From contig DF238762.1 in assembly GCA_000708835.1 (NCBI GenBank), forward strand, positions 62,001-126,000: DNA of 64,000 nt, given 5' to 3'. How positions within the stretch are numbered: position 1 is the first letter of the stretch; each line of letters starts with the position of its first letter. The notes under the pieces are model-generated. The model was not told where the DNA came from and made no database searches. It saw nothing but the letters and a program-made list of their open reading frames with translations. Made by a program: the position numbers and the translations under genes. Origin of the DNA: Klebsormidium nitens (lineage: Eukaryota; Plantae; Klebsormidiophyceae). Of the stretch, positions 6,817 through 11,123 are shown in pieces.

Positions 6817-7011
6817 CGTAGCCTCTTGCCATTAAAAAAAGATATTTTTGTAGCCCAATAACTATAACTTTGGGCTACAAAAATATCCAATGTTTATTTG
6901 TTTATTCTTTAAAAGCTTATTTTTTAAAGGTTCCCTGAAAGATTTCTAAATTTGTAAGTTCAATGTTAGGGCGCTCAATCGTGTAATTTTTTATTGATTG
7001 CATTCTACTTT

Positions 7012-7017
7012 ATGGGT
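7012..7017 (+). CDS. petB: Cytochrome b6, exon 1 (ATGGGT)
   Basis: 6-nt exon as in other streptophytes; joins to AAA GTC TAC at 8613 to give MGKVYDW, 215 aa. Confidence 0.8.
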
Positions 7018-7021
7018 GTGC

Positions 7022-7481
7022 TTGTGATTATCTATTACAATTTTTATACTATGACTCTTTAGAAGTTATACCGAGTGGTATGATTTGGCAGCTAATAGAG
7101 CGAATAAAATTAGACTTATGAGACAATTTAAATAAATAGGTAATTTAGGCAAAATGTTTTTAACGAAAATCTTCTTTACGCACATCGGAGAAGAATCAAT
7201 TCATTGGAACAAAAGTTTTACCAAGTCGCATGAGTCCGAGAATAATTGTGAGAAGATAATTCTTTCTCTAGAAACTTAATTGTAATGAATATTACAAACT
7301 TATATGATTCAATTTCATTTAAAAAACTAGAGATAGAAGGGAAAAATGAATAAAAAATTAAACTTTCGTCTCTTTATATTTTTAAATTCAGTAAAAAGAT
7401 TTAAAAAGAGACAGGGCCGTATGAGTTAAAAACTCGTGTCCGGCCCGATGAGAGGAAAACCAAAAGGTTTTCTATCCAGGC
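7022..7481 (+). other. Internal group II intron A nested in petB intron
   Basis: 5' TTGTG, domain V 7414-7446, bulged A 7474 at -8, EBS1 GCACAT (7180-7185) in hairpin loop pairs with preceding GTGTGC. Confidence 0.82.
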
Positions 7482-7753
7482 GACTCGCATCTCTCTTTGT
7501 AAATGATTAAAACAATAAAATCATTAGTCGACTCAGGCTTTGTCTTCGGTGACGGAGAAAAGTAATGCTTGAGTAGGATTGGAGTTTCAACAATCCTGTA
7601 CCGATTTTTTTAAAAATTAGGTTCGTTTAAACAAATGTGCAATTAAAAAACCTTAAAAGTTAGATAAAAAAAAAGCTGGAGTTTGATCAAATCCTTTGAA
7701 TAAACTTCTTTATACCAGTTCTATTTATATAAGGTATAGCATAGGCCTAACAC

Positions 7754-8365
7754 GTGTGAATTGAAGAAACCCATAGATAAAATATTATGACCTTTACTTC
7801 TTAATTCTATTTAAAAGATAAAAAAGTACTTAACTTTTTTGCTTAAAAGGTCTAATTCACTAAAGCGCTCTCTTTTGCCTCTTACAGAAAGGGTAAGAAG
7901 AAAATAACATAGGAGAAATATACAAAAAAGATAAGAAGATATTTTCAATTTTGTAAAAATGCATTTTAGCTTGTATTGACACTTGTATTGTTTTTTGAAT
8001 TGTAAGACAAGCTTATCGTGCTAGATAAAAAATGATTCTAAACATATTTTTTATGCTATCGAAGTACTGAGTGTTAGTATTTTGGATAAAACATTGAAGC
8101 ATAAAACACAATTTTGCAAAGTCTATTCTTATAAAAACAAAAAGTAGTGTCGAATATTTTGCTTTCAATCTAAGGAATAAACCAATAAATCTTAACAAAA
8201 TGAAAAAGAGCCAATAATAAAAGGTATGGCAAACTATATCTAACAAGATTGTTACTTTTTTACAAGTAAAACTTAATTGATATCAGTTTAGAGCCGTGTG
8301 CCTATAGTTTTGCATGCACGTCTCGAAGTGAATTAGTCAGGTAATCTATTAGCCTAACTCATTTT
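7754..8365 (+). other. Internal group II intron B nested in petB intron (3' end +/-1 nt)
   Basis: 5' GTGTG, domain V 8291-8324, EBS1 GTGTTA (8071-8076) in AAGTAC/GTATTT hairpin pairs with preceding TAACAC. Confidence 0.8.
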
Positions 8366-8597
8366 CTGTTCTACGAAATAAACAAAAGAGAAGACGAGAT
8401 AGTTTTTACTAGGCAGAAAAAATTTGAACTATCCTAGTACAAAAGATAAAATAATTTGTATCTTTCCGAAGATATGAATTGTGCCAACTAATAAATTAGA
8501 AAAACATAAATTATTTTTTATATTTTTTGTTATTAGTATGAGCCGGACGATGCACAAGCTTCATGTCCGATTCTAAAATGGAGGAAAGCTTTTATAG

Positions 8598-9254
<657 letters not shown>

Positions 9255-10066: not shown

Positions 10067-11123
<1,057 letters not shown>

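Follow-up and report, generated by a model that had tools for sequence, protein, structure and literature searches.

Klebsormidium is a soil alga. The stretch of its DNA analysed here (64,000 nt, hereafter the window) carries chloroplast genes in the order psbB-psbT-psbN-psbH-petB-petD, in which, according to open reading frames and translations, petB is split and petD is uninterrupted. Positions 6950-8700 of the window are 100% identical to DF238762.1 (GCA_000708835.1). There is also a psbA exon with group II domains V-VI in front of it, and the set of introns in the window agrees with Table 2 of Civan et al. 2014, where Klebsormidium is scored as having introns in petB and psbA and none in petD. 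Among group II domain V-VI matches in the window, the best (49 bits) is at 10309-10401, directly before the psbA 3' exon, which fits the trans-spliced psbA intron described for Klebsormidium (PMC4007539). The features recognized in and around petB are the following.

7005-7017, plus strand: petB 5' exon as seen by the host intron (sequence; RNA joint 7017/8613).
7018-8612, plus strand: host (outer) petB group II intron, 1595 nt, holding element A and intron B (RNA joint skipping 1595 nt).
7020-7481, plus strand: putative internal intron A, with limits ambiguous by 2 nt, from 7020-7479 to 7022-7481 (fold; restoration of the host 5' end).
7657-7663, plus strand: candidate host EBS2, AAGUUAG, pairing with 7005-7011 (alignment of ten DNAs).
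7681-7705, plus strand: host EBS1 hairpin assigned by homology, with stem GUUUGAUC/GAAUAAAC and loop AAAUCCUUU at 7689-7697 (position and context of 40 covarying loops).
7732-7753, plus strand: hairpin X, with apical stem AGGU (7732-7735)/GCCU (7745-7748), loop AUAGCAUAG and 3' tail AACAC (alignment; duplex energies).
7754-8369, plus strand: internal group II intron B, 616 nt, starting with GUGUGA and ending with CUGU, free of ORFs (RNA joint 7753/8370).
8052-8059, plus strand: candidate EBS2 of B, UAUGCUAU, pairing with host 7736-7743 (RNAduplex, -9.8 kcal/mol).
8062-8082, plus strand: EBS1 hairpin of B, with stem AAGUAC/GUAUUU and loop UGAGUGUUA (complementarity; stem kept in relatives).
8291-8324, plus strand: domain V of B, 34 nt, with AGC triad and a 2-nt bulge on the 3' strand (fold; nearly invariant in relatives).
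8325-8369, plus strand: domain VI region and 3' end of B, with candidate branch A8361, 8 nt before the splice site (consensus fold).
8370-8400, plus strand: host sequence after B, UCUACGAAAUAAAC, leading into the 3' strand of the helix that closes domain I (folds; alignment with land-plant closing strands).
8540-8612, plus strand: host domain V (8540-8573), domain VI (8582-8604), candidate branch A8605 and intron 3' end (fold, z = -2.8).
8613-9254, plus strand: petB exon 2 to the stop codon (ORF; translation; RNA joint).

Exon 1 of petB is the hexanucleotide ATGGGT (7012-7017), which carries the ATG. Its last four bases, GGGU (7014-7017), are the IBS1 of the host intron, and the candidate IBS2, CUACUUU (7005-7011), lies in the 5' UTR. 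The mature outer junction is present in an RNA contig of run X4, and the host 3' end gave a weak match to Rfam RF00029 at 8538-8615 (29 bits). Alignments show the host intron to be homologous with those in petB of Chara and land plants; judged from them, it is the positional homologue of the land-plant petB intron. With the land-plant and charophyte introns it shares the site after ATGGGT or ATGAGT, the GUGYGACU start, the EBS1 hairpin, a conserved domain I hairpin for which we coined the label hairpin X, the domain I closing strands and domains V and VI. Those introns measure 615-1014 nt and have no insertion at the site of B, whereas the Klebsormidium core amounts to only 519 nt without A and B; it is the nested insertion that brings the Klebsormidium petB intron to twice the usual length. 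The core, which starts GUGCGACUCG, was built with a script by cutting out A (7020-7479) and B, and was used for folding and alignment. Both the minimum-free-energy and the consensus folds of this core pair 7484-7500 with 8382-8398 as the domain I closing helix. Global minimum-free-energy folds of these AT-rich introns conflict with the consensus folds and were used only locally.

RNA data came from four runs, all of them Logan contigs of environmental metatranscriptomes, which represent related strains and are not raw reads of this strain. In X1, X4 and X11, runs from three studies, contigs link 7753 to 8370, skipping 616 nt (GT..GT) without positional ambiguity, and the joined RNA reads GGCCTAACAC|TCTACG. 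The initial annotation had delimited B as 7754-8365 and predicted a junction GGCCTAACAC|CTGTTC (within one nucleotide). Its 5' site is exact, the real 3' end lies 4 nt further right, at 8369, and the contigs carry TCTACG in place of CTGTTC. The X11 contig spans 7414-7753 and 8370-8446: B is absent, whereas host intron sequence and the A 3' junction persist unspliced, which indicates that B was removed while the host intron remained. Excision of B alone, with the host still present, agrees with the earlier proposal of a second splicing event on the path to a translatable petB mRNA. The contig shows that such an intermediate occurs and is not proof of a compulsory order. Contigs with unspliced B occur in the same runs, with the B 3' end retained to 8394. 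Two of the three B joints (X1 and X4) are in contigs that stop 30 nt past the joint, which is the behaviour expected where spliced and unspliced paths merge in a de Bruijn graph. Both joints of a twintron were observed, the inner at 7753|8370 and the outer at 7017|8613, and B lies wholly inside the host intron.

The joined contigs differ from the window in having G at 7680, C at 7711 and AT or AC inserted after 7663. Ten DNA loci were retrieved through the exact psbH protein, comprising the source record and nine metagenome assemblies that are 78-98% identical to it over the region. Both B and A are full length in all nine metagenome relatives, several of which share variants of the joined contigs (7680G, 7711C and the AT after 7663). 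Since B is kept in 10 out of 10 DNA loci (78-100% identical), the joint is attributed to splicing and not to an allele devoid of B; such an allele as the source of the joint appears, from these loci, very unlikely.

The anatomy of B points to the same boundaries. GUGUG at 7754-7758 coincides exactly with the RNA joint and conforms to a GUGYG 5' boundary. GUGUUAG (8071-8077), in the EBS1 hairpin, pairs perfectly with CUAACAC (7747-7753), a 7-mer match expected 0.028 times in shuffled B, and GA, which precedes it in the loop, pairs with UC (8370-8371). All nine nucleotides of GAGUGUUAG (8069-8077) are complementary to CUAACAC|UC, the host sequence as ligated, and this fixes 8369|8370 as the 3' splice site independently of the RNA. 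In subgroup IIA, the EBS1 loop pairs with both exons in this manner (PMC4424553). The stem of this hairpin is preserved among the relatives via one-sided changes, and the EBS2-like UAUGCUAU lies immediately 5' of the hairpin, its partner being AUAGCAUA (7736-7743). The domain V stretch of B folds overall no better than shuffles (z = -0.76). Searches with Rfam, including Intron_gpII, gave no match to the domain V of B or of A at E<=1, and the host domain V alone was found, weakly. A8361 is invariant but paired in the predicted fold, and no clearly bulged branch adenosine is predicted. The 3' terminus of B is GU instead of the usual AY. In the most divergent relatives, L004 and L006 (L004:10349-12124 and L006:10347-12115), G7754>A occurs together with a change of the penultimate base, G8368>A, and B starts with ACGUG and AUGUG, respectively. 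In group II introns the first and the penultimate base are in contact, and the paired change looks like covariation of the intron ends. No ORF of note was detected in B, and splicing must consequently depend on factors supplied in trans. Within the 64-kb window, blastn retrieved no paralogues of B, A or the host core. Considering the RNA joint, the EBS1/IBS1 pairing and the conservation in DNA, B is an intron of its own within the petB (cytochrome b6) intron, as had been claimed initially.

A second internal intron may be present in the 5' part of the host. Element A contains a strong domain V/VI-like fold at 7414-7475 (z = -4.05), and cutting A out restores a canonical GUGCGAC at the host 5' end. 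The candidate EBS1 of A, GCACAUC (7180-7186), pairs over 7 bp with GGUGUGC (7015-7021), which would set A at 7022-7481, with the start UUGUG. No RNA joint for A was found among the contigs of the four metatranscriptome runs, and in one contig B is spliced and the A 3' junction is unspliced.

Homologues of the host intron were obtained through psbH relatives, which yielded Chara (L014), a partial Chaetosphaeridium locus (L016) and a land-plant-like locus (L020), and further petB introns were collected by scanning metagenome contigs for the pattern of the exon 1/intron boundary. With L014, L015 and L020, the set comprised 40 distinct full-length petB introns of 615-1014 nt, 33 of them following ATGAGT and 7 following ATGGGT. 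The loci left out were L011/L012, L013, L018 and L019, where petB is intronless, L017, where no petB exon 2 was found, and L016, which ends inside the intron. In the 40 introns, covariation with exon 1 is seen in a hairpin loop that precedes a shared anchor by 38-58 nt: this loop reads ACUCA (or AUUCG, ACUCG) with ATGAGT, and ACCCA, GCCCA or AUCCA with ATGGGT. This covariation identifies the upstream loop as the EBS1 of petB introns. In Klebsormidium, the hairpin at 7681-7705 stands at the same distance (48 nt) as in the homologues, with the same UUAUAC motif after it. The loop AAAUCCUUU of this hairpin is unchanged in all ten Klebsormidium DNAs, and AUCC (7691-7694) within it faces GGGU (7014-7017), forming only 4 bp. 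On this assignment by homology, B leaves the predicted host EBS1 hairpin (7681-7705) intact. The candidate EBS2 is situated shortly before this hairpin. The EBS2-IBS2 pairing predicted for it has 7 bp in most relatives and one mismatch in this strain, and is supported by a compensatory change in L004 (C7005>T with G7663>A). The mismatch is caused by position 7660, which is U in this strain and G or no base in most relatives.

The insertion point itself belongs to another element of domain I. The 22 nt preceding B align with AAAGUAUAGCAUAAAUCUAAAGUUC of Chara and GGUUCUAGUAUGAAUCUGAGGUUU of land plants, and the land-plant counterpart of hairpin X is made of GGUUC, the loop UAGUAU and GAAUC, plus outer pairs. 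The Klebsormidium stem of hairpin X is a candidate, and consensus folding offers a competing pairing of 7744-7750 with 7616-7622. Hairpin X doubles as the 5' exon of B, containing both its IBS2, AUAGCAUA, and its IBS1, CUAACAC. As placed by the alignment, B is located at the 3' foot of the predicted hairpin X, 13 nt before the domain I closing strand, where Klebsormidium CAC|UC corresponds to land-plant GGU|UU. No insertion was found at this site in any of the 40 comparison petB introns. Position 7732 is A in this strain and G in all nine relatives, so that a possible UAGGGU/AC|UCUA pairing spanning the B site is weaker here.

Other assignments in this region were considered and discarded. B could have been placed in the 3' part of the EBS1 hairpin, as ACGAAAU follows B in the way that it follows the Chara hairpin; the alignment, however, matches the flank of B to an element downstream of EBS1. 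CCUAAC was considered as a tetraloop-receptor on the model of CAUGG...CCUAAGG in L023, but the required pairing is missing in most taxa. A perfect complement of exon 1, ACCCAT (7769-7774), occurs 15 nt inside B, and as a host EBS1 it would be excised with B. The site reads ACCGU in L002, L004 and L006, one such 6-mer per 1.6 kb is not unusual, and its complementarity to exon 1 is taken as chance.

The explanation that we favour, and hold to be likely, is that the petB intron is a twintron in which B is inserted in domain I at the foot of hairpin X, reads host RNA as its exons and leaves first, the host EBS1 remaining intact. B would recognize the host exons through its EBS1 with CUAACAC, through two loop bases with UC, and through the EBS2-like sequence with AUAGCAUA. 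It is excised as a unit from the unspliced host, and the host RNA is religated at 7753|8370. While B is unspliced, its exon-binding sites, which cover 15 of the 18 nt of hairpin X, would keep this hairpin unfolded, and B would put 616 nt between hairpin X and the closing helix, presumably hindering the folding of the host. On this view, the host ribozyme would mostly wait for the departure of B before it folds and links the 6-nt exon 1 to exon 2. It is reasonable to infer that the removal of B is obligatory for host splicing.

It is possible, though unlikely, that B is spliced but its removal is dispensable. The folded B would in that case bring its own ends together, the host would splice around it, and the order of events would be kinetic. 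Folded group II introns do hold their two splice sites close, and nested introns whose inner member is not necessarily the first to leave are known (PMC8393795). In the petB intron, however, the exon-binding sites of B pair with most of hairpin X (15/18 nt), and RNA with B spliced and the host unspliced was abundant enough to be assembled in three runs; it is also often the case that the inner intron must go first (PMC4424553).

A more far-reaching version of the favoured twintron would make the removal of B a regulated, rate-limiting switch for cytochrome b6, with a trans factor licensing the splicing of B and the start codon being joined only then. The start codon is in exon 1, and no cytochrome b6 can therefore come from unspliced RNA. 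We regard such a switch as quite doubtful; if it existed, it would form, together with A, a two- or three-step splicing cascade within a streptophyte plastid, and it would be the first twintron in the lineage leading to land plants.

The model of the initial annotation, in which B (7754-8365) occupies the terminal loop of the host EBS1 and its removal pairs TAGCATAG with CTGTTCTA so as to present GCCUA to exon 1, is very doubtful. Its pairings exist on paper: TAGCATAG (7737-7744) and CTGTTCTA (8366-8373) are pairable at seven of eight positions, one of them as G.U. However, CTGT (8366-8369), which supplies four of the eight stem pairs, leaves with B, as follows from the RNA junction at 8369|8370 and from the B loop, whose complementarity to CUAACAC|UC places the site at 8370, so the closing stem cannot form as proposed once B has been removed. 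The stem is also broken in L004 and L006, where 7742 G stands opposite 8368 A. GCCTA (7745-7749) is pairable with exon 1 TGGGT (7013-7017) with two G.U pairs and is the longest contiguous complement to UGGGU nearby, with 5 bp as against 4 bp for AUCC/GGGU, but the match is at chance level: a shuffled host intron should have about 15 G.U-tolerant 5-bp sites, and the real one has 11. The GCCUA segment is invariant in the ten DNAs; as both EBS1 candidates are invariant within Klebsormidium, this genus does not discriminate between them. The comparison with other taxa does. Where exon 1 is ATGGGT, the segment aligned to 7745-7749 can pair with the exon in 9 of 11 cases, but in all 33 ATGAGT introns it reads AUCUG, AUCUA, ACCUG or AUCUC (xxCxx), and, by keeping a C opposite the exon A, none of the 33 can pair 5/5. 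The covariation with exon 1 is found in the upstream hairpin loop instead, which argues against the claim that B interrupts the host EBS1 stem-loop. By alignment, the GCCUA formerly called EBS1 is the 3' strand of the predicted apical stem of hairpin X.

A 'zombie' twintron, in which B would not be spliced separately and the joint would come from the DNA of B-less relatives or from DNA carry-over in the RNA libraries, is extremely unlikely, for although the joined contigs hold variants absent from the window and contigs alone are no proof of transcription, ten DNA assemblies, the same variant haplotypes included, contain B, the X1 and X4 contigs end 30 nt past the joint as fits a merge with the unspliced path in the same sample, and the joint falls exactly at the GUGUG start and the EBS1/IBS1 pairing of B.

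Twintrons are documented in the plastids of euglenids, cryptophytes and red algae, in cyanobacteria, in archaea and, recently, in plant mitochondria. As a kind, nested group II introns are already known (PMC8393795, PMC4424553). Those of the Euglena gracilis chloroplast include the psbF twintron (Copertino & Hallick 1991) and complex twintrons (Drager & Hallick 1993), both as summarized in PMC8393795 and PMC4424553. On the strength of these summaries, the petB intron resembles the Euglena cases in that a group II intron lies within a group II intron of a plastid photosynthesis gene and the inner one is excised as a unit, and possibly in having more than one internal intron per host. Unlike in Euglena, the host here is an ancient streptophyte petB intron common to land plants, in a primary green plastid. 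The inner intron of psbF is described as lying in domain V, whereas B is in domain I, beside the exon-binding arm; the Euglena introns are described as much reduced, whereas B has 616 nt, and its EBS1, EBS2 and domain V are clear.

Plant mitochondrial twintrons (Zumkeller, Gerke & Knoop 2020), such as atp9i87g2ii1114g2 in Phlegmariurus, are comparable, as outlined in PMC10012718, in that they occur in a streptophyte organelle and have a maturase-less inner group II intron. According to the same outline, the distinction between functional (sequential) and 'zombie' twintrons has to be settled by RNA data there too. The two differ in organelle, B being plastid, and in that the inner introns of the mitochondrial cases are described as having recognizable paralogues elsewhere in the genome, whereas none was found for B in the 64-kb window. 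Nested group II introns that are spliced sequentially are also described for Trichodesmium (Pfreundt & Hess 2015) and for Porphyridium plastids (Perrineau 2015), and the petB intron shares with them, as these studies are summarized, sequential nested splicing in a photosynthetic bacterium or plastid. The introns in those summaries are mostly mobile, ORF-bearing and recently inserted, whereas B is ORF-less, and it is conserved across Klebsormidium lineages down to 78% identity.

Full-text searches of the literature on twintrons in Klebsormidium, petB and streptophyte chloroplasts gave no earlier description of this twintron; the word twintron is absent from two Klebsormidium plastome papers, where the petB intron is listed as single. 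A functional twintron in a plastid of the green lineage was apparently unreported before. In Lemieux et al. 2016, seven of the group II introns are noted as Klebsormidium-specific and as having probably proliferated inside the genome, and the psbA intron is noted to contain an RT/maturase ORF. It is plausible that this ORF was the source of the activity that once inserted B. A spliced twintron within the petB intron inherited by land plants means that an old, immobile intron was itself invaded, and it offers a natural system for asking whether an insertion in domain I forces the order of splicing. For annotation, it is a caution that G.U-tolerant 5-bp matches are too common for calling EBS1, and that covariation among homologues is needed.

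Two further observations concern relatives and the window at large. An intronless petB, uninterrupted over 215 aa, is encoded at L011:3526-4173 and L012:954-1601 in a taxon whose psbH is 77% identical to that of the window; this taxon may be of use in dating when the petB intron was gained or lost near Klebsormidiophyceae. On the minus strand of the window, 56808-56994 matches Rfam IsrR, the antisense RNA of isiA, with 173 bits. This match most likely reflects an isiA-related protein of the CP43 type encoded on the plus strand, and does not imply an antisense RNA.
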